A stretch of 64,000 bases of DNA, taken from positions 2,914,001-2,978,000 of the forward strand of contig JAMWBK010000002.1 in NCBI GenBank assembly GCA_029953675.1, written 5' to 3'. Numbering within the stretch: position 1 is the first letter of the stretch; every line of letters starts with the position of its first letter. The notes below the pieces were generated by a model that saw only the letters and a program-made list of their open reading frames with translations, did no database searches and was not told the origin of the DNA. A program made the position numbers and the translations under genes. The DNA comes from Rhodosorus marinus CCMP1338. Its lineage: Eukaryota > Plantae > Rhodophyta. Below are positions 2,877 through 54,061 of this stretch, one piece after another.

Positions 2877-4032
2877 TCAGCAGGAGCCAGCAGCAGTGGT
2901 CGCGAGGTTGTTAGCATACATATGTCGAATATTATACAGTGCTTCTTTGGTCTCGTGTGGCAGTGCTTGTGATGTGTGCTTGCGTCTCATATACTCTTGG
3001 TATCGTGCAGCTCGCTTGTCCATGTCGGCCTTGGCTCTTCGATAGGACAAAACTACCCTCGAGTAATGGAACGCGTTGAAGTCTGGCCACATGACTCGCA
3101 GAAATGCAAGGTGCGAAAAGGCAGATTGCCAGAGGAGGAAGTCAGAGAGCCGAGTTTCTCCCGACGTGCGTATGAGGACGTCCGGCCATCCATCAGACTT
3201 AAGGCCTCCACGGCAGGTGCCGGACTCTAAGAATTCAGCGAGTAACTCCTCGTTCACCTCATCGGGTACTATCCCGTCCGAAATCGCGTTTGTCACAGCT
3301 GCTATAGCTTGCGCAATCTCTACCCTAGATGTGTAGGCAAAACAAATATTCAGGGAAGCACCCTCGTACTTGCTCGTAACGCACGTGAGCTTCGCTGCTA
3401 GAACCCTTAAAGTTTTAGGAACCATATCCATTTCGCCCCAGAATCTCACCCTTATCCTTTCTTTGTGAACAGCGCTCCTAAAATGCAAATGTAAGCGGGG
3501 CAATGGACAAAGTCAGAAAATCTTTGGTGCAAGGGAGCTTAGAGAGTCTGCCCATCGCGTACAAGACCGCGAGCGTAACACCAGAGTAATAGAAACGCAT
3601 CATTCAAGACGCTCAGATCCGGGATCATCTTGAATTTGACGAAATTTGCATTTCAGGCTCTCTATCTCACCAGGGTTGGAGCATGTCTTCAACGTTCTGA
3701 ATCGCAAGATCCATGATATAGTCCACTTCACCCTTCGGACGCTTGAAATTTTCAATCGAAAACGCGTAAACTGTGATAGTAGATATATCTGCATCGCGAC
3801 ACCACGTTAAGAATTCAACCATCGTGTTCCCTCCACGTCTATGACCATCACGAAAAGCCATAGACTTCCTCCGGGCCCACCTCCTGTTTCCATCCATGAT
3901 AACGGCGACATGCTTCGGGCAGTCTCCTGAGTACCGCAGGGCCGCAAGCACCAGCTTTCTCACAGGTCTTCCTCGACTAAGAACCACCAAAACCACTACA
4001 ACGAGCAGACCAAAAGTCCACTCTACCAACAT
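2877..4032 (-). CDS. DHDDS: cis-prenyltransferase (dehydrodolichyl diphosphate synthase / UPPS family) with N-terminal TM anchor; exons 4032-3671, 3477-2877; about 320 aa
   Basis: Family motifs PKHVAVIMDGNRRWAR, TVYAFSIENFKRP, FAYTSRVEI, PDVLIRTSGETRLSDFLLWQ and WPDF are present. A phase-2 intron joins the two ORFs. Confidence 0.92.
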
Positions 4033-5185
4033 CAGGATGAGGCGCTTTACATCTACCCCACATCTAAGCAAAAACAAAGAAGATCAACCTACGACTGCTA
4101 ACGCCTAGCAGCGCCCTTTTCCACCCCTCACATCAATCTCGACTTGTCCTATCATAAGGTAACTTCTAGACTCAAGATCGATTCCCTCAAACGGAACCTA
4201 CATTGGCACAGCCCCCTCACCGGAAAACTTGTTGGTTCCCTCCAGTCGAGAGACTGAAAGCTTAGTAACCGCGGTCACAGTTGAGAAGGTCGGGTCGCCC
4301 GTAAACTAGCCTCGCGATAGAAACTGGAGGTGGTCGCCGGGAGCCAGAGCCTTGACGAGAACGAAGCGAACGCAAACTCGATGCCGATGGCCACACTACT
4401 TGACTGAGAAACGCTTAAAAGATGCCCCGCTCCTCTTGGAACTACCTCCAGCTTGACCCCAAGCAACCCATACGCTTTCCGTTCGTTGGGGTCGTGGTTC
4501 GGCCTACAAGCAGAGAGAGGCATCTCTTTGTCCCCCTCGCCACAGGAGCCGGGACGATGGGCATTAGGTTTGTTTCAGTGCGGTGCCATGGAATATCTTG
4601 AGGCCTAAGTCTCTAGCTTAGCTGGGAAATGACGATTCCCTTCCAATACCTGGTCGATATGGTCATTAGGGGGCGTCATGTTCATGACAAGCGCCTTACG
4701 CTGAGGCTGTAGAGCGAATGTTCTGCCAGTCCGGGTGAGTCGACTGACCGCTGTCGTGCCGTGCGATTTCGAGGTTCCTGAGGATCGTCAACGCATGCCT
4801 GTGGTTTTTACGGCTCATGGGCGGTCAATGCGACTAGGCCCAGCCCTGCTATTCGGAGGATTCCGATCCAAACGGGGGATGAGCTGAGCAGACACATGTG
4901 TCAGTCTGGACGGGAAGGTTTGTCCCAATACTCCCAGCAGTCCCTGATGAATTGAGACTACTGCCAGATCCGTTCGCCGAGGTTGCTGAGAATCGGACGG
5001 CGAGAGCCATCGGATTTTGTCAGTGGGTACTTGGACGAACCCACCCCTCCGCTTTTCTGAGCCGCCTTCGGCTCCTTTTTCGTCCGTGTAAAGCGCTCTC
5101 CCCAAGGGCAATTGTTTCGATTTCCTTTCACCGTGCCTATAAGAACTATCACGAAAATACCTCACGACCAGGACGGAGGGGCCCA

Positions 5186-6239
5186 CTATTTCCTATGTGT
5201 ATTGAGGTGCATCGGACCCATGAAACCGGTGTCATATCTCCCAGGGCGCCCCATACAACCCATACTGCTCCTCATCCCTCCCATGCTCGCTGCACTGCAT
5301 GTCCTGCCCATGTGTTTCATGCCGCATCCATGGGTCATGCCTGCTCCAGTATTAGAAGTCGGCACATCCCTCCACCAGTCTGTTCCTCCCTTGGGACCTA
5401 CTGAACCAGGCGGTGGTAGTTTGAAATTGATCTCGCATTGAAATACCTCCCAGGCATTCTGCAACTCGTCTAGGATCATCTCGGCTAACACAACGTCCTT
5501 GAGTTTAAGACCTTTCTGTTGGATCTTATCTGGATGAACAAGTAGCACCTGGCGAGTAAAAAAAATGCCTTCAGCTAAAGGTATTAGAGCAGCACTTTGG
5601 ATGGCCAATGCTTACGGCTTTGTAGTAGTGGATCTTAATCGTCGCCTGCTCTTTTAGCTGAACCGTCGATAGAGGATTCCATGATGTTCCTTCGTAGATG
5701 ACTTGATGAAATCTAGAGAGCAATTCGCGAATATTGCCTCGATGAGTGCCTCTGTCGGTCCATTTCTCAAGCACCGGTTGAACGACAACGCGTAAGCCAT
5801 CCTTGGCATTGCTTTCGTTAGCCTGAGTTCGGCAAAAAAAGCGGTGCGCGAGGAGGTTCGGAGGGCGGCTAAGTTATTACTACAGCAGGATCTTCAAGAA
5901 TACTGTAATCTGCACCACGCATGGGAAACTCACCTGCTTCTCCGAACGGGCCCGCACCTCGGCAATTTTCTCATCCACGCGACCTTGAGTTTCATCTTCA
6001 TTCCGTTTCTGTATCGCCTGCCTCCGCCTCAGTTCAGTTTTTTTATCATCAGCAGTGGTTGTGGTTGTGGGCATTGGTTTCTTGTTTGCTGTGAGCGACT
6101 TCACGGGATCTGCGTTGACATGCTTCGAACAGCTTCCATCGCCTCGTACCGCGTGCACCAAATTACTGACAGTTCCTCCACGAGCAAGCCAAAGCAGGAC
6201 CACGGAAGCAAACACGCTGAACGTCCACTCCAGAAACAT
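5186..6239 (-). CDS. Chimeric protein: cis-prenyltransferase-derived N-terminal membrane anchor fused to an auxilin-type J-domain; exons 6239-5934, 5822-5616, 5548-5186; about 291 aa
   Basis: The first 41 aa (MFLEWTFSVFASVVLLWLARGG...CSKHV) align to the DHDDS N-terminus. The remainder aligns to the last three exons of the gene at 7141-10319, with the same intron positions. KAVLLVHPDK is intact and the spliced frame has no stops. Confidence 0.82.
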
Positions 6240-7140
6240 CAAGGTCAACAGATCAGGAGAACAAAGAAAACAAAAAAAACAGAGAGAGAGAGAGAACTTC
6301 TCTCAAACCAACATCATTACCTCCGACAAAGAGGAAAACCTCCACTGGATCCTAAACACTGCTGACTTCCGTCGTTCACATCGCTACCAGCCTAAATCAC
6401 TTCAAAGAAACCCATCAGGAAAAACACGTATGAACATAACCACCCAAAAACACACACGGACCACCAGATTACCAATAAGATCCATGTCAGCAAGCTGCAT
6501 TTGCCTCGCCGGTAAGAAATCCTCAACTTCAAATTTTAAACGGCGAACCAATGATAAGGAAGAGCTTTTCTTTTAGTACATAGTACTCACCAACTCTATG
6601 TACTAAGTGACCTTAACATGAAACGATGTATGATGGGGCCCGGCGGCAATGGGACAATGGAGTATATCCCCCTCTGAAGAGGCCATTCCCAATGCGATCT
6701 TGATAAAAATTTCCATGGGTAACGCTTGACTTTGGACTACATTGCTCTTCGCTCCGTCAAGAGTTTCGCCATGATTCGTCGACTCCTCGTGTCCCATTCA
6801 AGCGGCAGGGGGAGGGCGGGTGTACTTGTGTGAAGGATGGTTTTCCTTTTTCTTTTTTTTGCAGCAACTAGCTGATGTGGTAGCGCTGCTGGGTCTACTC
6901 TATGGTGATCGTGCTTTTTGAGGGCTGAGAGGACCAGTACATCTAGGGGAATTGAATAGTTAATTTTTCAATAGCCGTTAGGAGTCAAAAAGCGCTGTGA
7001 TCCGTATGTGCAACGCCCAGTGGTTTCTAAAGAGCGCTGCTCTGGTGGCCCTGCAAGCACTGCACGAGCGACCAAGAATCTTGCTCTCCGCGTACTAACC
7101 AACCTTACAACAAAACGCAGAAGGACTGCAAAATGATAAA

Positions 7141-10100
7141 TCACTTCCTTTGAGTTGAGCTCGTGCGATTCATTGAGCCCATTGAGCCCATTGAGCCCAT
7201 TGAGCCCATTGAGCCCATTGAGCCCATTGAGCCCATTGAGCCCATTGAGCCCATTGAGCCCATTGAGCCCATTGAGCCCGTATTCATACTGCCAGAGCGG
7301 GCCATGTTACCCATACTCCCCATGCTGCCTCGGCCGCCCATGCTACCCATACTGCTGTTCATGCCTCCCATGCTGCCTTGACTTCCCATATTCCCCATTC
7401 CACCCATACTGCCTTGACTTCCCATACTGCCCATGCCTCCCATGCTTCCCATGCCTCCCATACCACCCATACCACCCATACCACCCATACCACCCATACT
7501 TCCTCCCATGCCACCCATACCACCCATACCCCCCATACTTCCTCCCATGCCGCCCATACCTCGCCCCATATTGTTTCCCATGCTACCCATGTTGTTCATA
7601 CCACGTCCAGCGGCCATGCCGGCGCCCGCGTTTGCGGTACCCCTTCCCATCCCACGGCCCATTCCACCCTTAGGACCAACAGACCCCGGCGGGGGCGGTT
7701 TGCCATCAATCTCACACTGAAATACCTCCCAAGCGTTCTTCAGCTCGTCAAAGATCATTTCCGCCAATACGACTTCCTTCAACTCAAGGCCTTTTTGTTG
7801 AATCTTGTCTGGGTGGACGAGAAGCACCTACAGATACGTGGCAAGCGTTTCAGCGCATGCGGTGATGCCGATAAAACGTAGAGTCCGTACTTACCGCCTT
7901 GTGGTAGTGGATTTTAACTCTAGACTGCTGCTTTAGCTTATCCATGGATAGCCCCTTCCACGAAGTTCCTTTGTATAGAACTTGATCAAGTCCACAGAGC
8001 AAAGCGCGAATGTTCCCACGACGAGACCCTTTTCCGGTCCAATTGTCCAGCTTCGGCTGTACTGCATCGCGTAATCCATCCTTCGCATCGTTTTCCTTGA
8101 CCTGGAAGGACAAGAAGTGGTCACCCGAAGAGGAGGAAGGGATTGAATGAGCCTTTGGGGAAGACGCCAACAGCTAAGAGGCTAACACTACGAATCAGGA
8201 ACCATACAGAAACGCGTAGTTGATTCTCACCTGTTGCTCTTCGCGGTCCCGCACCTCGGCAAGCTTTTCATCCGCACGACTTTGTATTTCATCCTTATGC
8301 TGCTTTCGTAGTTCTTCTCGTCTCTTCAATTCACTTGCGGAATCCTTCGTTACGGCGGCGGGTTTTGGTGTAGGTTTGGAGGTTGGGGAGCTTGTGGGAG
8401 CTGACGCTCTTGACGAGCTGTGGGTTTGTGGCGCAGACGAGGTCGGCATATTGCTGAAGAAGCTGGGCTTTGCCGACTTTGAGGCTGTGTTGTTAAAGTC
8501 TCCAAGCAGGTCGCCTTCAGCACTCGCAGGCGCCTTCCGGCTGCTGGTCTGTGTAGAGAAACCCATTAAGTCCTCCAAATTGCTGCCGGGCGGTTTCGAC
8601 TGAGTAGTACTAGTTGACGACTTCTTAGCTGGTTCGTCAAAAATTCCTAGCAAATCCCCATCCTTCGTGCCCCCTGACGGCCTCGACACCTTGGAAGGTG
8701 GCTTGCTCTGTACGCCAATACCAAACGGATCATCTTTTGAAGCAGTCTGCGTTTTTCCCTTCGAGATGCTGGTGTGCTCCAAGCTCTCCCTGGAGGTATC
8801 GACGGAAGATCTTTGTGAACCCTTGGAGCGAGCGGGCGTTCCTCTTAAGGGCACGCTGCTTTCGTTTCCTCCAGCTCCCGTGGCTGGGTAATCGCTAGTG
8901 GATTTACGTCTCCCTTTTTCTTCCTGGGCCTTGTTGAACGATCCGGCGAATGAATTGGGATCGGCGTCATTAGTGTCATCAACAAAAAGCTCGTTCATTG
9001 TATTCCCTCCGCTTTGGGCTTTGTCATCACTTGAAATCTTCTTGGAATCTCTCTTCATGGAAGCTTTCGGAGTGGTTCGGCCTAGATGTAACCAAAATTC
9101 AGAACACCATCAGACCACCTCATTTCCGAAGAGTAACTACGCGCTGGAAGTTTTGGAAAGGATAATACGCACTTGCAGCTTGGGGCGAGAACTTGCTGCG
9201 ATCTTCCATAGTCTCCGGACCTATCGTCTCCACGATTCCCTCGAATATCCCAATTGATTCCGCCATGAAAATCTTCTGTGCCTCAAGCATCTCCGCCAAG
9301 CTGTATTCGATCAGTTGTGCTCTTTGCGGAATGGCCGCTTGGAAAGTGTCCTATGGAGTTTTTAAAGGCCAAAGTCAAATATTATTCAGAGCAAGTTCGT
9401 GGTGGCTCTCTTGTTCGTGAAGACTGGAGTTCTCAATCCTACATCCAGATGCACAGTGATTCCTGTAAGCTCAGACAAGGTATCATCTCTCTTCGCTGTG
9501 TCTTCTCTGCTAGAGTGGCCATCAACTCGAGCTTGATACCTATCATAATCCAAGAGGATTCTCTTTCGTTTTTCGAGTCGTGACTCAACGTCTCGAGCCC
9601 GGTTTAAATCCTCTTCCAACGGTCTCAGAATCTGCCGCTCAACTCGAGACTCAAATCTGTAAAACGTCTCGTCCGCAAAGGCCATCTGCACGAATTACGG
9701 GGTTCAATTGAGACGGTTAAAAGACGAGTATGCAAACTCATGCAGATTTTGATCTGGAATCGAGTCATACGTATCCGGCCATTGACGCCTCGGCGAGGGT
9801 TGTCGTAGATTCCGACGGATTTCCAATCATGAGCACGTCATAATAAGTTGTGGCAAGCCCATGGCTCGCTGAACACATTCGACTGTGCTGTACAAGGACC
9901 GCTTCCGCCCCGTCCTTGATCTTCCTAATATTCGCAGACTGTCGCATGAAGGTCGCTATCATTCGCTCGAACTCTGGGTTCTCGCCCCTAGATTCGGAGA
10001 TTCCGACCTTAAGGAACAGTAGAGTAGACGGACCAATCAATTAGAAAAGGCCTGTGCTTATTTGATTTCAAGCATGGCGCTAGCATGAAGATGAAACTCC

Positions 10101-10319
10101 CGCCACAAGAACAAAACGAGTTCTATCAACGCAAGGCAAACAGAACAGAAGCCAAACCTTGGCGCGAGTTCCCGCAAAGCCTGGTTTCACGAGGCAGAAG
10201 GAGCAGAAAAAACATACCCGCTGATAAAACGACTGCTTAGCCCTTTCCGTAGCTCGCTTTGCCTCCACACCAAACGACTTCAGCGCTCCGAAGACATCGC
10301 CCCCTCCGGCAGACGACAT
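7141..10319 (-). CDS. BAR-domain + low-complexity linker + auxilin-type J-domain (HPD) + Met/Gly-rich tail; exons 10319-10218, 10007-9771, 9685-9443, 9350-9173, 9081-8231, 8101-7895, 7827-7141; about 834 aa
   Basis: The BAR-like segment reads RLEKRKRILLDYDRYQARVD...LEAQKIFMAES. The auxilin-like C-terminus reads RGNIRALLCGLDQVLY...W...VKIHYHKAVLLVHPDK. All six introns are GT-AG and phase-compatible. Confidence 0.85.
7172..7279. repeat. Perfect 12 x 9-bp tandem repeat (ATTGAGCCC), encoding (GSM)12 in the J-protein tail
   Basis: Units were counted directly. Degenerate GGM-type repeats continue upstream to about 7620. Confidence 0.97.
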
Positions 10320-49181: not shown

Positions 49182-51580
49182 GGACTATAATGGGTGTATA
49201 TGAAAAAATGTCTATATAAAGCTGTGTAAGATGAAAGTTTGTGCGGTCGTCGATTGCAACTGTGAAATGAAAATTGGAGACTGTTGAATGCAGTTGCAAA
49301 GAACAGTATGCCTGTGTATATGATCCTCGAAATGGGAAGGGTGTTGAATATATGTATTAAAACTGAAACACCGTTGGAGTTGAACTGTTAGAGTTGACCC
49401 CAGCTGCCACATGACAGTCAAGAGATAATTAGTAGTACAGACGTAAGACCAGTTCAGTCGCAAGCTGAAGTCTGTGATATAGGTGTTGAGTTCACTGTTT
49501 GAGTTGATCTGAACTCATTCAGTCGCAAGCTAGCGTCTGTGAAGTACTTCTTGAGTTGAACTGATTCAGTTGACTTGACGTCGGTTAGCGCGTAGGCGGA
49601 TTTAGATGCCCATGGATGCTGATAAGAGGAATTGGTTGAACGGCCCTCGCGAATAAATCAAACGATATCTAGTGTGAACTGTCCGGTACCTTTGCCAGGG
49701 CTAACACGGCGAGAAGGGGGGGACTACGCTCTACGCAAGTAAGGATCCTCAAGAACTCTGAGTTCCCTCCGAAGTACCAGAGTCGCCTGCGAGAGTCGAT
49801 TGCTCTAAGATCGTTGGGCAGATCCAAAAACAACGGACAAAACAACCAGCCGCTTCGGCGAGGCATGTACGCTGGTTGAAGAACGCGGAGGAAACTCCCC
49901 CAAATACGGCGGCACTATGCTCCCCGTTCCTGCTTGGACGCCAGTCCTGCCCTCTTTTCACAATTGACGTAGCGTATGACAAGCAGCTTGGATGGCGCTC
50001 AACCTCGGAGCGTACTCCATTTCGGGAACCAATATTTGGAACATGTCCAGTGCATACTACGATCAAAACAGAGTTAGAGAGGAATCAAAATTTAGACTGC
50101 GACGGTCATGATTTATATCCGTTGTTTTCCACGATCACCAAAATCTTGTATTGTTCCTCAACCTAGCTTATTTTTAGCAAATTTAAGACCGTTTCCGTCA
50201 TATTCTAAATAGTATATGCTAATATATTTCTTAGTTATCACCTAAATATCTAAATCTATCTCAATGAACAAAATCTGAACAAAATGGGGCAGAATGAACT
50301 TCTTTTGAGGGTGCCTCTTTCTAATTCATGTACATCTCAATCATAATGGATGAGGGCCATACGGAAAAGTTTCTAAATATTGTTTTTTTTGCATATTTAG
50401 AAAGGCACTTTTTTCGCGAACGAGAAGCGTAAAAACTCGGTATTTGGGGATGCCACGTTGGGTAATACTCAGTGCCATTCCTTTGGATTTCCGGAGTGTG
50501 CAAAGAGTTTGAAAAGACGGGCTGTGTACCAGCAAACAGTGCAGACCAACATTGACTTGTTCTCTCCAGCGTATTCCGAGGAGGATATTCGGAGATTTCT
50601 CGTCGAGCCTTTCCAGCCGCGGAGTCCTCCGGCAACGGAACAACTTTTTCCCGATCGCGTTGGAAGCGTCTGGACGGCTGAACGACCACCACGGTCGGTC
50701 CCTCACACGGCATCTGGATCCTAATTCTTCCCCAATCTCACCAGCACTGGAGGCACTATGGAGATATTCTTGGCGGAGTACTCTTGGGTAGTATTGAACG
50801 CTGGAACGTCCCAAACCTGACTCTTAGAGAAATGCATTGACTTGGGTTTTGTTTCACTTGCTGCGTTACACGCCTCGATTCGGGAGGGTTGATTTCTAGC
50901 GGAGAGGATGGCTGTGTAGCTAAACAAAGTAGGCCGATATCGACCTTTCCCTGTCGAGCGTGTTATGAGCAACACATTGGGAAAAAAAAAAATTCCTGGT
51001 CCGGGCTTTCCAGCCTGTGCACTTATTGCCCTCCACTTTTCCGCTTCGTTTAAGAGCCAAACCGACAAGTGCAAGAATCGGGACGGGAGCTGACTTCGTA
51101 TTTGAGCATGCCTTTCTGCGTAACTTCCTACACGGTGTCTAGATTCGTGGTGATGCGAATAATCCCCACCATTTTTTTTGCGTAATCTGAAGAGCAGATA
51201 GTCTCTGATAAGCATCTATATTCTTGCAAGTTTGAGTAGCACCAGTTCATTGCGTTCATAGCGAGCAAGATCTCTACCCGCACAATTCCAAGGAAGACGC
51301 CGGAAGGAAACTTCACAATAACGTCATTCCGTAGGGTGAGCAAGATGCATGTGAAGGTGTGTGTGGGTGTCGAAACCCTTGCACATATGAAATTAGCCTG
51401 ACTATGAATTACCTGACTTCTTTCAACAAATGTTTCTCAAAGCCACATCGCAGCGCCCGCCCATATATCATCGCGGATTCTTGACCATTTGTTACGCTTT
51501 GACGCGGGCAATGGTTGCAATGGTGCCGGCAATGATGGCAACGATGGCATGATGACAACGACGGCATGATGACAACGCTG

Positions 51581-51706
51581 GCAAACGATGGCAATGATGG
51601 CAATGATGGCAATGATGGCAATGATGGCAATGATGGTAATGATGGCAACGATGTCAACGATGTCAACGATGGCAATGATGGCAATTGTGGCAATGGTGGA
51701 GATGGT
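51581..51706. repeat. Degenerate 9-bp minisatellite (GGCAATGAT), about 14 units
   Basis: Five perfect units occupy 51590-51634, followed by variants (ggtaatgat, ggcaacgat, gtcaacgat and others). A 17-bp duplication lies just upstream at about 51543-51576. Confidence 0.93.
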
Positions 51707-54061
51707 CAATGCAAAACCCAATATCAACCTGGACCCCCACCCACTGCGGGGAGCAGTCGGATGCCGTGGATTAGATGGTGTTTAGACTACACACGCAGAA
51801 ACCGTAGCCACGAGAATATCAAATCCTCTAAATTTCCAAACAAGAAAGCAGTAATTCGTTGAAGAGAGAAAAAACCGCCATTCTTGAAGAAAAAAAGGAG
51901 CATGATTGAGGCACGTGGAACGCTGCTTCCACTCCCCCCGAATGGATTCCGATCCAATCTAGAAATTCAGAATAGAGAAAAAAAAGGAGCCACATCCAGG
52001 ACAAATCTTTTTTAGCACTCTCCGAAACATATACTTTCCAAGGGGATTGTACCGACAAGCATAATTTAATCTAAAATAATATACGCGAGAGTGGTTTTGT
52101 TTTCGAATTTATGATATAGAAAATCTAGAAATTCAACTGATTGGAGCCTCTTCCTGATTGACAGATGTATGCAACCGGAGATTCAGGGCCATGGCTTAAA
52201 AAAAGGAAGGAGGATAGCAAAATGAAAACCATTACGAAATAGATTGAAGAAACCAATTTTTTTTGGACAACACAGCAATCTAAAAGTATAAAAAAAACAA
52301 AAACATGAAAATCAATTGATCAATATTTCGATGGAGCCTCCGAATTCACAATACAAAAAATGACGCTCAAGTTCTAGAGGGTCCTATTTTGGGAGCTTTT
52401 TTTGATAGCGGATATTTCGTACGTCTTATTTCGTACGTCTTGTGCTGCCGTTGAAGAAGATCTTTTTTTATGTGAATACAAGAAACTTCTAGTCGCACCT
52501 CCCTTCTTTTTTCCATCACTATTGAATTGCGAGATATCGTATTTTGATTAATTGTTCTAACCACCAAGGGGTTGCGCGCAAGTCACATTTTGAATCTGTT
52601 TTCCTGACCTCTTAAAAACTTTCATTCATTATTTAGGAAACCAATGAAAGCCACAACAAGATCGTATGGCGGGTGTTTTGTACCATCTGAAGATTGCTGA
52701 AGGGGTGCGGAGAAGTTTTCTGCTGCTTGTAATCTCAACTAACGTCCAGGAGCCGCCTTGTAGTCTGATGCACATCGGTTTTCTCTGGACGTCCTCAATC
52801 TCAAAGATTGGTGGGGCGAGGCGGGGTAAGGTTTTTTTCTTTTTGCCGAGCCCCATGGGATTTGATAGTAGTGGCCGCCGTTCCAGCAAAAAAAATTGCC
52901 GGAAGAATCCTCTTAATACATAACAGGCATGCGCTGAATGCTAGCATGACCGGCAGGCCTACCCCCCTGTAGTTTTTTTTGATGATTCCCCGTTCGAATT
53001 GACTTTTTGGTCTCTTTTGCAGGACATGCAAATCTTCTACATTCCTGATTCCACTACTTAATCACAGATCAACGATTGGCGTCCGCTTTGCGTAACAAAC
53101 TATTGATTGGATTGATACTAACGGAGCGTCAGAATCGACGATATGGCTGAGAGTGGGTGCCGTGCTTCTCCTTGTTTCGAGCCAAGAAAAATAAACATAA
53201 TGTGGACTATTTCATTTTTCCATTTTTGGGTGGGGATTCTCCATAACAGGAATCTCAAAACGTTGACCAACTGTCCAAAAATCTTGCGCATCTCCCCCCC
53301 TCCATCCTATTCCAATCTTCTTGTTGTAATCAAAAATATTCTTGAAAATTTTAAAACATTAGTAAGATTCCAACCGCTAGGTGCAATTATGTTCCTCCCG
53401 GAGGGGGGGGTTGTCGTCAGCGCACCAACCAGTAGCCCCGGGAGAATATCAAAAAGATTACGGAGAATCACGGAAAAAATTGCGTATGTCTTATTTTTCA
53501 GGGTGGTGTCGTTGCCAGGGTTACACAGCCACCATTTTCTACTAATAAATCGCTCCACCCCCCTTTTTTCTTCTTAACTTTTTTCTGAATCTTGATCACG
53601 CATCCGAACAGGAGAATTTTCTTTTTTAATTCATATTCGTCGGACGCACCTCGCGTCGAATATTGTGGCCCTCTTCGGAGGGCGCGTGTTCGGGGCCCCT
53701 GTCCATTTTTTCTTATTAAGAAGGTTTTCAATAGTGCGATGCGGGAGGGCGGCAGAGGACCAGAAAAAGTGTCACCACATCCAAATCACCCTGCGTTGAA
53801 ATGAAACCAGAAGGAACAACTATATATAAAGAGGAGACAGGATTTTCTGGACTGCTGAGTAGAAATACGGAACTGAAGCTTCAACGATAGAAGGGAGAAA
53901 TAAAAAGAGCGCGAAAGGAGCTGAATGGTTTAGACGGAGTTGGAAGTATTTTAGGCTGAGGGGGTTGAAGTTTGGATATTTATAGGGGACTTTTCTCTAT
54001 AATGCTCAGATTTGGGGTTTTGTGAGTAATTAGAAGGCTGTTGGAATACATTTGGGATATT

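Follow-up and report, generated by a model that had tools for sequence, protein, structure and literature searches.

What kind of gene lies between two genes whose fragments it appears to carry, and how did it come to be there? The question is raised by a 64,000-nucleotide stretch (the window, to which all positions refer) of contig JAMWBK010000002.1 in assembly GCA_029953675.1 of strain CCMP1338 of the unicellular red alga Rhodosorus marinus (Stylonematophyceae). On the minus strand of the window follow, in this order, a gene for a protein with a BAR domain and an auxilin-type J domain (BAR-J, 10319-7141), a shorter gene at 6239-5186 and a gene for a DHDDS-type cis-prenyltransferase (DHDDS, 4032-2877). 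Our gene models uphold this order, which was given in a first-pass annotation made from the letters of the DNA. The analysis shows that the chimeric gene at 6239-5186 is genuine: it is transcribed, spliced and maintained by selection in Rhodosorus, with its 5' end homologous to DHDDS and its remainder to BAR-J. The best explanation of the locus as a whole, and one in which we place good confidence, is a selected chimera that arose by tandem duplication and whose product would hold a J domain at a membrane.

A gene composed of pieces of its two neighbors

The three minus-strand gene models were made by hand from the sequence, with every intron bounded by GT-AG. The coding sequence of the chimeric gene (5186-6239) comprises three exons that encode 291 aa without internal stops: exon 1 (6239-5934, 306 nt), intron 1 (5823-5933, 111 nt, phase 0), exon 2 (5616-5822, 207 nt, 69 codons), intron 2 (5549-5615, 67 nt, phase 0) and exon 3 (5186-5548, 363 nt including the TAG stop). 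The model is identical to NDN08_008208 (KAJ8908113.1) at 100% identity and coverage, and the product lengths in the public annotation of the three loci (834, 291 and 320 aa) are those of the hand-made models. The public label of the chimera is merely 'hypothetical / J domain-containing protein'.

Codons 1-41 (6117-6239) correspond to the beginning of DHDDS. Blastp aligns chimera residues 1-41 to DHDDS residues 1-42 with 21/42 identities (E=4e-8), the same count that had first been made by hand, and blastn aligns 6241-6117 to 4034-3907 at 64% over 128 nt. The local alignment score of 91 compares with 19-21 ± 4-5 in 3000 shuffles (maximum 50), and it holds when the hydrophobic block is shuffled separately, 0/3000 shuffles reaching 91. 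Since the shuffles never match this score and both blast comparisons agree, the homology of the head to DHDDS lies far above any effect of composition. The copied part of DHDDS is its first 42 codons (4032-3907); the match stops at K-H-V, directly ahead of IMDGNRR, with GAAGCATGTC common to 6126-6117 and 3916-3907, and the positions read here agree with the earlier description of this boundary. Human DHDDS (6W2L) aligns to the algal DHDDS from residue 33 (...PKHVAVIMDGNRR; E=1.7e-56), and DHDDS residues 33-42 (...PKHV) are part of the conserved cis-prenyltransferase core. The last ten DHDDS-like residues of the chimera therefore come from the core of an enzyme, which sets the direction of transfer from DHDDS to the chimera. 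The Prenyltransf family of Pfam matches DHDDS itself at E=4e-63; the chimera has no match to PF01255 and lacks the catalytic (I/V)MDGNRR, and by these signatures it is not a prenyltransferase.

Everything downstream corresponds to the 3' part of BAR-J. The parent gene (7141-10319) has seven exons (10319-10218, 10007-9771, 9685-9443, 9350-9173, 9081-8231, 8101-7895 and 7827-7141) and encodes 834 aa with a Pfam BAR match of 43.3 bits (cut-off 28.5) and a weak DnaJ match. Chimera residues 45-284 are 57% identical to BAR-J 482-720 (blastp, E=3e-84), and at the nucleotide level 6039-5250 matches 8336-7523 at 65.6%. The remainder of exon 1 (5934-6116), which blastp and blastn trace to the final part of BAR-J exon 5, codes for a disordered linker rich in P/T/K (residues ~42-62) and the start of a long helix (63-123). 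Both introns of the chimera keep the position and phase of their BAR-J counterparts, as the first-pass annotation had recognized: intron 1 stands where BAR-J has intron 5 (8230-8102), and intron 2 agrees with BAR-J intron 6 (7894-7828) in length as well. Exon 2, which encodes the N-terminal part of the auxilin-type J domain, corresponds to BAR-J exon 6 (8101-7895); the earlier description of an identical 207-nt middle exon stands for its length and for its 39/69 identical residues, but the two exons are identical in length only and not in sequence. Exon 3 encodes helices II-III of the J domain, PPPGSVGPKGG and the tail. Its HPD motif, the tripeptide by which J domains contact Hsp70, read from the sequence as His176-Pro177-Asp178 (5528-5536), is intact as previously stated, and the similar ends that had been noted are indeed seen in ...NTHRK* of the chimera and ...STQRK* of BAR-J.

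The copied part of BAR-J extends from inside exon 5 (~8336-8420) to the stop. The low-complexity P/T/K residues 42 to ~65 of the chimera align weakly to BAR-J, and for this reason the breakpoint in BAR-J is placed no more finely than ~aa 480-505. The N-terminal 480 residues of BAR-J are missing from the chimera, in which Pfam detects no BAR domain and which is, by this measure, not a BAR protein (PF03114). The tail, which contains Met, Gly and Cys residues, some of the Cys gained, has shrunk from ~175 to 65 residues, so that the proposed loss of BAR and shortening of the Met/Gly tail are both confirmed. Also upstream of the breakpoint, at aa 371-450 of BAR-J, lie two DLL motifs, a DLM and a DPF, which we take to resemble clathrin/adaptor-binding motifs; a search of the chimera for DLL, DLM, DPF, DPW and NPF found none.

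Transcription and splicing in a second Rhodosorus lineage

Is this open reading frame (ORF) used? An exhaustive protein search returned a 101-aa fragment (P0002) that is 81% identical to the chimera-specific C-terminus, and no orthologue of the chimera outside Rhodosorus. The fragment is encoded by a contig of the Logan assembly of SRR32518360 (L002), which is genomic DNA orthologous to 6060-5060. Its identity to the window is 83-86% in exons, 73-80% in introns (80% in intron 1 and 73% in intron 2) and 82% in 125 nt of downstream flank. The splice sites are kept and the 570 nt of exons 2-3 contain no indel, while the adjacent 310 nt of non-coding sequence have 11 gap columns. In the same 90% cluster as the fragment is P0159, a complete 291-aa ORF from the MMETSP transcriptome of Rhodosorus marinus (Transcript_9080/g.39956), which is collinear with the chimera across the junction and both exon-exon joins. 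At 219/222 positions P0159 agrees with the translation of L002 after splicing, and retention of intron 1 or intron 2 would bring in-frame stops; a second Rhodosorus lineage therefore transcribes the chimera and splices it, with the DHDDS-derived head inside the ORF. The first-pass annotation had regarded a spliced transcript as the first check on its proposal, and this complete ORF provides one.

The same data bear on the possibility that the three-gene arrangement, or the junction itself, is an artefact of assembly or annotation, which had been named as a way in which the proposal could fail. The assembly was built from Nanopore data with NextDenovo and its genes were called by BRAKER2 trained on RNA-seq (PMC10250338), so a long-read build and automatic models might invite suspicion. 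False duplicates would be near-identical, whereas the copies seen here are ~65% identical in DNA; moreover, chimera-specific sequence recurs in an independent genomic contig (L002), and the full ORF with its junction recurs in an independent transcriptome (P0159). A difference of ~35% in DNA together with recurrence in independent data excludes an assembly artefact, and we give this explanation practically no weight.

One MMETSP contig, Transcript_9080, carries both the complete chimera ORF and the complete DHDDS ORF, which could reflect read-through transcription, overlapping untranslated regions (UTRs) or merging by the assembler. The DHDDS gene itself (2877-4032; exons 4032-3671 and 3477-2877, 320 aa) is covered by a cDNA contig (L003, JGI 3300017118) that confirms its intron at 3670-3478 and extends its 5' UTR to ~4578, at least 546 nt upstream of the ATG. 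A 59-aa upstream ORF of this cDNA was considered as the C-terminus of the chimera on a bicistronic cDNA and rejected, as L003 starts at ~4578, in intergenic DNA, and is collinear with the genome.

Selective maintenance

Values of dN/dS (omega), the ratio of nonsynonymous to synonymous divergence, are Nei-Gojobori estimates; between orthologues they apply to codons beyond the first 70, anchor and junction being compared at the protein level. Over exons 2 and 3, the chimera orthologues have dN 0.094 and dS 0.53 (omega 0.18; Fisher p=2e-13 for synonymous versus nonsynonymous change), with omega at 0.06 in the J core around HPD, 0.14 in exon 2 and 0.39 in the tail. Measured against non-coding DNA, nonsynonymous change (39/444; proportion of differing nonsynonymous sites, pN, 0.088) is again reduced, with 62/300 (0.21) in the latter, a ratio of ~0.4 (p=6e-6). 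Between the chimera and BAR-J as paralogues, omega is ~0.13 with synonymous sites saturated. None of these three comparisons yields a value near 1, which the first-pass annotation had associated with a decaying duplicate. Between the two lineages, the parents evolve with dS 0.24 and omega 0.13 (BAR-J) and dS 0.21 and omega 0.09 (DHDDS).

The protein comparison shows where constraint is concentrated. The chimera and P0159 agree at every one of the first 28 residues (28/28), compared with 78% of the remainder (p ~9e-4), while the linker is identical at 39/59 positions with in-frame indels, exon 2 at 58/69, the J core at 51/55 and the tail at 47/65. Constraint on the chimera is thus real, yet relaxed outside the J core and the anchor. 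The J core also retains 48/55 amino acids of BAR-J with a proportion of synonymous differences (pS) of 0.82; recent gene conversion was considered for this resemblance and is ruled out by the saturated synonymous sites. A neutral frame of 291 codons would stay free of stops with a probability of at most 1e-4 at 0.5 substitutions per site.

Could the gene be a transcribed but functionless duplicate that decays slowly? Its rate might suggest so. In Tajima-type counts, 19-28 changes fall on the chimera and 1-5 on BAR-J with seven BAR-J homologues as outgroup (p 2e-3 to 5e-7), and 14-17 against 5 with two distant BAR-J2 proteins as outgroup (p 0.01-0.04); the J-domain dN between lineages is ~4.7 times that of BAR-J, so that the chimera evolves ~5 times faster than this parent. 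The weak constraint in tail and linker, the transcript contig shared with DHDDS, by which the RNA signal could be partly read-through, and the restriction of the orthologue found to Rhodosorus would also fit decay. Against it, the frame, splice-site pairs, start and stop are intact in two lineages that are ~20-25% apart in non-coding DNA, and these features have persisted while neutral sites became saturated after the duplication. Nonsynonymous sites have changed significantly less than synonymous sites and less than non-coding DNA, conservation is strong in the J core and the anchor, and all indels are in frame. We therefore consider a functionless duplicate highly improbable. The earlier observation that frame and splice sites survive next to flanks that no longer align holds in both lineages, and the description of an old, selected new gene agrees with saturated neutral sites and constrained nonsynonymous change.

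Some observations nonetheless temper the case for a maintained gene. The RNA evidence comes from the second lineage, none having been seen for CCMP1338, whose model is a BRAKER2 prediction; that lineage is itself put together from L002, L003, L004 and P0159 (including Logan SRR32518360 and SRR32518361) by their near-identity. In addition, the pS of the chimera (0.38) exceeds the divergence of its own introns (0.20-0.27) and is about twice that of both parents (0.18-0.21). Because pS looks inflated, an omega of 0.18 is probably too low, and the ratio of ~0.4 to non-coding DNA is the safer estimate. Candidate causes of the high dS are a transition/transversion bias in the Nei-Gojobori method, a constraint on codon usage in the parents, or different source strains. 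A shift in codon usage was considered and is unsupported, GC content at third codon positions being similar in the three genes (0.53-0.55).

Probable origin by tandem duplication

How did pieces of two neighbors come together? The 5' segment of the chimera is homologous to its downstream neighbor and the 3' segment to its upstream neighbor, all on the same strand and with an in-frame junction. A tandem duplication with both boundaries inside parallel genes is a standard route to chimeras (PMC4069613). Here, breakpoints in BAR-J exon 5 (~aa 480-505) and just after DHDDS codon 42 would produce, on one strand, BAR-J, a spacer, a DHDDS head joined to a BAR-J body, a second spacer and DHDDS. The in-frame junction would create a new gene between two intact parents, and its promoter would be an inherited copy of the DHDDS upstream region. 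The first intergenic copy, between BAR-J and the chimera (6240-7140, 901 nt), would hold this promoter under the tandem-duplication model; the second (4033-5185, 1153 nt) holds the 3' flank of the chimera and the long DHDDS 5' UTR.

The first-pass annotation had proposed a single tandem duplication; order, orientation and the in-frame junction fit it, while the intergenic copies are saturated and add no confirmation. Blastn of 6240-7140 against 4033-5185 detects no similarity, and the 200 nt upstream of the chimera and DHDDS ATGs give z=1.4. As the spacers share no similarity, the hallmark of a single duplication cannot be seen, and the one-step origin rests on order, orientation and frame, which counts against too firm a reading. 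The spacers also differ in length, and residues 42-~65 of the chimera align poorly to either parent. These features would be accommodated by an origin in several steps, in which the BAR-J 3' part was duplicated first and the DHDDS 5' end was acquired separately, by ectopic recombination or a further small duplication, or in which a larger duplicate later suffered an internal deletion. However, loss of spacer similarity is expected, because even the paralogous introns are saturated. The order BAR-J, chimera, DHDDS on one strand is exactly what one tandem duplication produces; as one step would require, the downstream parent gave the 5' piece and the upstream parent the 3' piece; the junction is in frame and inside an exon; and the single-step route is documented as the common one (PMC4069613). 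A multi-step origin is in our view unlikely, and one tandem duplication probably made the chimera. The one outgroup locus with sufficient context, that of a BAR-J homologue in Gracilaria domingensis (L005), has no prenyltransferase neighbor, but at so great a distance this does not weigh against the model.

The duplication is old. No similarity is left (z ≤1.4) between paralogous introns, between the 3' flanks or in the 200 nt ahead of the chimera and DHDDS ATGs, from which its age follows; together with the blastn result for the spacers, this bears out the earlier remark that flanking DNA was beyond alignment by eye. A neighbor-joining tree of 149 J-region columns joins the two chimeras with 100% bootstrap, and groups the chimeras with Rhodosorus BAR-J with 100%, in a clade apart from NDN08_005124 and the Purpureofilum, Gracilaria and other red-algal homologues. 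These groupings place the duplication within the Rhodosorus lineage, before the two sampled lineages split.

Chimera intron 2 (5549-5615) and its BAR-J counterpart (7828-7894) are both exactly 67 nt long though unalignable, and the orthologue of each in the other lineage shows 3 gap columns; the equal lengths may be a coincidence or a sign of a narrow preferred intron length in this genome. NDN08_005124 (P0153), on another contig, is a protein of 517 aa with an auxilin-type J domain and no Pfam domain at E≤0.01; that it is a BAR-J paralogue is suggested by an N-terminal resemblance seen by eye alone. Its orthologue in Purpureofilum apyrenoidigerum joins it with 99% bootstrap, and transcript support comes from MMETSP0011. 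With BAR-J and the chimera, it brings the auxilin-type J proteins of the R. marinus genome to at least three. Two 189-aa genes further downstream, beyond the window (L001), were examined as tandem paralogues and show no similarity.

A J domain predicted to be held at a membrane

What would the product do? Its J domain is a bona fide auxilin-type domain by sequence and predicted fold. Domains of this type differ from the generic DnaJ form by an additional N-terminal helix and a long loop. In a phmmer search of PDB, the chimera matches JAC1 (3AG7, 1.7e-15) and bovine auxilin (1NZ6/1XI5/2QWO, 2e-9 to 3e-8) and no other family. The AlphaFold 2 (AF2) model, searched with Foldseek, has as its six best matches only auxilin and JAC1 structures with target-normalised TM-scores of 0.70-0.83; for the best of them, the J region reaches 0.81-0.83 with a root-mean-square deviation of 2.0 A. 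HPD is invariant in a 17-sequence alignment and aligned to the HPD of auxilin and JAC1. The Pfam DnaJ model scores the chimera below threshold (18.7 vs 27.8 bits), as it does BAR-J and the DnaJ-matching BAR-J homologues (16.6-21.5 bits). In the AF2 model, residues 2-19 and 24-31 form two helices, the second of them short, and residues 32-58 are disordered; then come the long helix (63-123), the J domain and, from residue 237, a disordered tail, with confidence (pLDDT) >90 over residues 70-210 and 61-75 for residues 1-30.

The putative membrane segment is contributed by the DHDDS head. Residues 5-19 (WTFSVFASVVLLWLA) are a hydrophobic helix followed by R20 and, as far as K-H-V, by what is left of the conserved N-terminal helix of cis-prenyltransferases. 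In this anchor 15 apolar or small residues stand in succession, and the best Kyte-Doolittle mean over 15 residues is 1.94. In the DHDDS of Purpureofilum, Porphyridium and Erythrolobus, a hydrophobic segment with a basic cluster behind it lies ~25 residues before P-K/R-H-V/I-A-x-IMDGNRR; such a segment occurs in 55/117 of the best homologues and is absent from animal DHDDS. The head therefore represents an ancestral and presumably functional anchor of the algal enzyme. The conserved DHDDS segment, the 28/28 identity of the anchor and the match to auxilin and JAC1 in sequence and fold put the initial inference of a membrane-anchored (perhaps ER, endoplasmic reticulum) Hsp70 co-chaperone on better ground, although it stays an inferred function.

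In dolichol synthesis, the catalytic domain of DHDDS works on the cytosolic face of the ER. Given this location and the positive-inside rule, we infer an anchor with its N-terminus out and its C-terminus in the cytosol. The short N-terminal helix would act as an uncleaved reverse signal-anchor, as presumably in red-algal DHDDS, with Arg20 and the following segment in the cytosol. It would hold the long helix and the J domain on the cytosolic side of the ER, or perhaps of another endomembrane, where HPD would stimulate the ATPase of cytosolic Hsp70. Since BAR and the DLL/DPF motifs are lost, targeting to clathrin coats should be gone, and Hsp70 would instead be recruited constitutively to whichever membrane hosts the chimera. 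We lean slightly towards this mechanism, in which a cytosol-facing, anchored J domain recruits Hsp70 locally.

The same chimera might nevertheless adopt another topology or reside in another membrane, by means of a cleavable signal peptide, an anchor with the N-terminus in, or a signal-anchor for another organelle; the J domain would then lie in the ER lumen with a BiP-type Hsp70, or at the mitochondrial or plastid outer membrane. Several properties of the anchor detract from the cytosolic ER assignment and lend themselves to such an alternative. The segment is short, its 15 apolar residues include two Ser, and its Kyte-Doolittle mean compares with 2.69 in DHDDS; the position-independent Hessa-scale sum of +1.5 is borderline. 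Where DHDDS has the basic cluster RGRPVRK, the chimera has a decayed version, RGGTVSN, which leaves one of the four post-anchor basic residues. With moderate hydrophobicity and most basic residues lost, insertion, topology and target membrane are uncertain. Outer-membrane signal-anchors typically combine moderate hydrophobicity with basic residues on their C-terminal side. Signal peptidase cleavage follows the -3/-1 rule, which A-R-G at residues 19-21 would fit, and AF2 confidence is low for residues 1-30. On the other hand, Glu4 is the only charge before the helix, which has no positive charge ahead of it and Arg20 behind it, an arrangement that favors N-out and C-cytosolic; the parental DHDDS arrangement must keep the catalytic domain cytosolic. 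Auxilin-type J domains are not known to have partners other than cytosolic Hsc70; 2QWO and 1XI5 are among the structures matched here. The tail has several Cys but ends in NTHRK, with no ER-retention signal. A different topology or membrane thus appears possible but rather improbable compared with the cytosol-facing anchor.

A more specific and doubtful proposal is that the fusion moved an auxilin-type J domain from clathrin coats to the dolichol-making membrane, as a tethered Hsp70 recruiter particular to Rhodosorus. The chimera and DHDDS would then still have upstream-derived regulation, and even a transcript contig, in common, and the product may act on DHDDS or the glycosylation machinery, or at another organelle surface if the destination of the anchor has changed. 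If true, this would be the first described membrane-anchored auxilin-type J protein, with a new function traceable to a single dated rearrangement.

Relation to known systems

Three groups of proteins offer comparisons for the product. With auxilin, GAK, plant AUXILIN-LIKE proteins and JAC1, the chimera has in common the J subtype, an intact HPD and the position of the J domain towards the C-terminus after a long helix; it differs from them in having no clathrin/adaptor motifs and no PTEN-like, kinase or BAR module, with a hydrophobic N-terminal helix in their place. It is accordingly an auxilin by its J domain only, its sequence offering nothing of the clathrin binding that marks a functional auxilin, and is probably not a clathrin-uncoating factor. 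A comparably hydrophobic segment is present in ~3 others among the 150 best J-domain homologues, which indicates that a hydrophobic segment combined with this J domain is a rare architecture. Yeast Hlj1 and human DNAJB12 and DNAJB14 are membrane-anchored J proteins with a cytosolic J domain. The proposed likeness to them is a single helix that fixes the J domain at the cytosolic ER face and allows local activation of Hsp70; the homology is limited to the J fold, those proteins being of the classical DnaJ type with other anchor positions, whereas the chimera has an auxilin-type J domain and an anchor taken from an enzyme. From the red-algal BAR-J proteins (P0004-P0008, P0152 and Gracilaria domingensis KAI0561578.1) it retains the coiled-coil and J module, PPPGSVGPK, the Met/Gly-rich tail with a basic end and the intron positions. 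It differs from them by the absence of the N-terminal 480 residues (BAR and the disordered DLL/DPF region), by its shorter tail and by its DHDDS head.

For the mode of origin, the closest parallel is the class of Drosophila chimeras formed by tandem duplication (Rogers et al., 2009; Rogers and Hartl, 2012, both as cited in PMC4069613). In both cases, the downstream parent supplies the 5' end together with its upstream region and the upstream parent supplies the 3' end, the new gene stands with an in-frame junction between intact parents on the same strand, a membrane-targeting segment is changed and the new copy evolves faster. Most Drosophila cases are young or polymorphic, whereas that of Rhodosorus is old, with saturated neutral sites, and concerns a unicellular red alga with a 31-Mb genome, where upkeep is documented in two lineages. 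A limited literature search found no paper on the chimeric origin of NDN08_008208. Chimeras of this origin and the general principle of tethering a J domain are both familiar, and current concepts stay unchallenged.

The value of the locus lies in the legibility of a gene birth: both parents still lie beside the product, one side of the junction is resolved to within a codon, and two lineages document that the gene is expressed and under purifying selection. The event exchanged the localisation module and kept the module that recruits Hsp70, a natural experiment in which an auxilin-type J domain was cut from putative clathrin-binding sequences and presumably tied to a membrane. Red algae underwent severe ancestral gene loss (PMC6811547), which makes the routes by which they regained functional diversity of some interest.

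Other features of the BAR-J family and the window

The BAR-J polypeptide unites a BAR domain, a disordered region with DLL/DPF motifs and an auxilin-type J domain. Its homologues include P0004-P0008, P0152, P0153, P0012 and P0013. Proteins of 780-900 aa with the same layout, PPPGSVGPK and a tail rich in Gly and Met are found again in other red algae, where the BAR match is below threshold at 21-23 bits. The exact 834-aa BAR-J sequence was not found in the protein collection searched. In Arabidopsis, separate BAR-SH3 proteins recruit auxilin-like uncoating factors (bioRxiv 10.1101/2022.01.07.475403); since these are separate proteins there, red-algal BAR-J looks like a fusion of two interacting functions.

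In the BAR-J tail, a perfect 9-nt repeat (GGCTCAATG, Gly-Ser-Met) occupies 7171-7279 on the minus strand in 12.1 copies that are 100% identical; a longer degenerate Gly/Met-coding array, at 7360-7570, surrounds it. The identity of the copies points to a recent expansion. The tail of the chimera, unlike that of BAR-J, is short and without repeats.

A self-comparison of the window revealed no further copy of the chimera or its parents, and Rfam and tRNA scans of the window gave no matches. Other unusual architectures occur in this J-domain family: P0010, a 374-aa protein from a Logan contig of 16.8 kb, combines two auxilin-type J domains in tandem (HPDR and HPDK) and lacks a BAR region, and P0134 (273 aa) carries a strongly hydrophobic segment C-terminal to its J domain. 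Finally, the self-comparison detected a short, imperfect local tandem repeat at 51507-51711, with copies ~80-84% identical.

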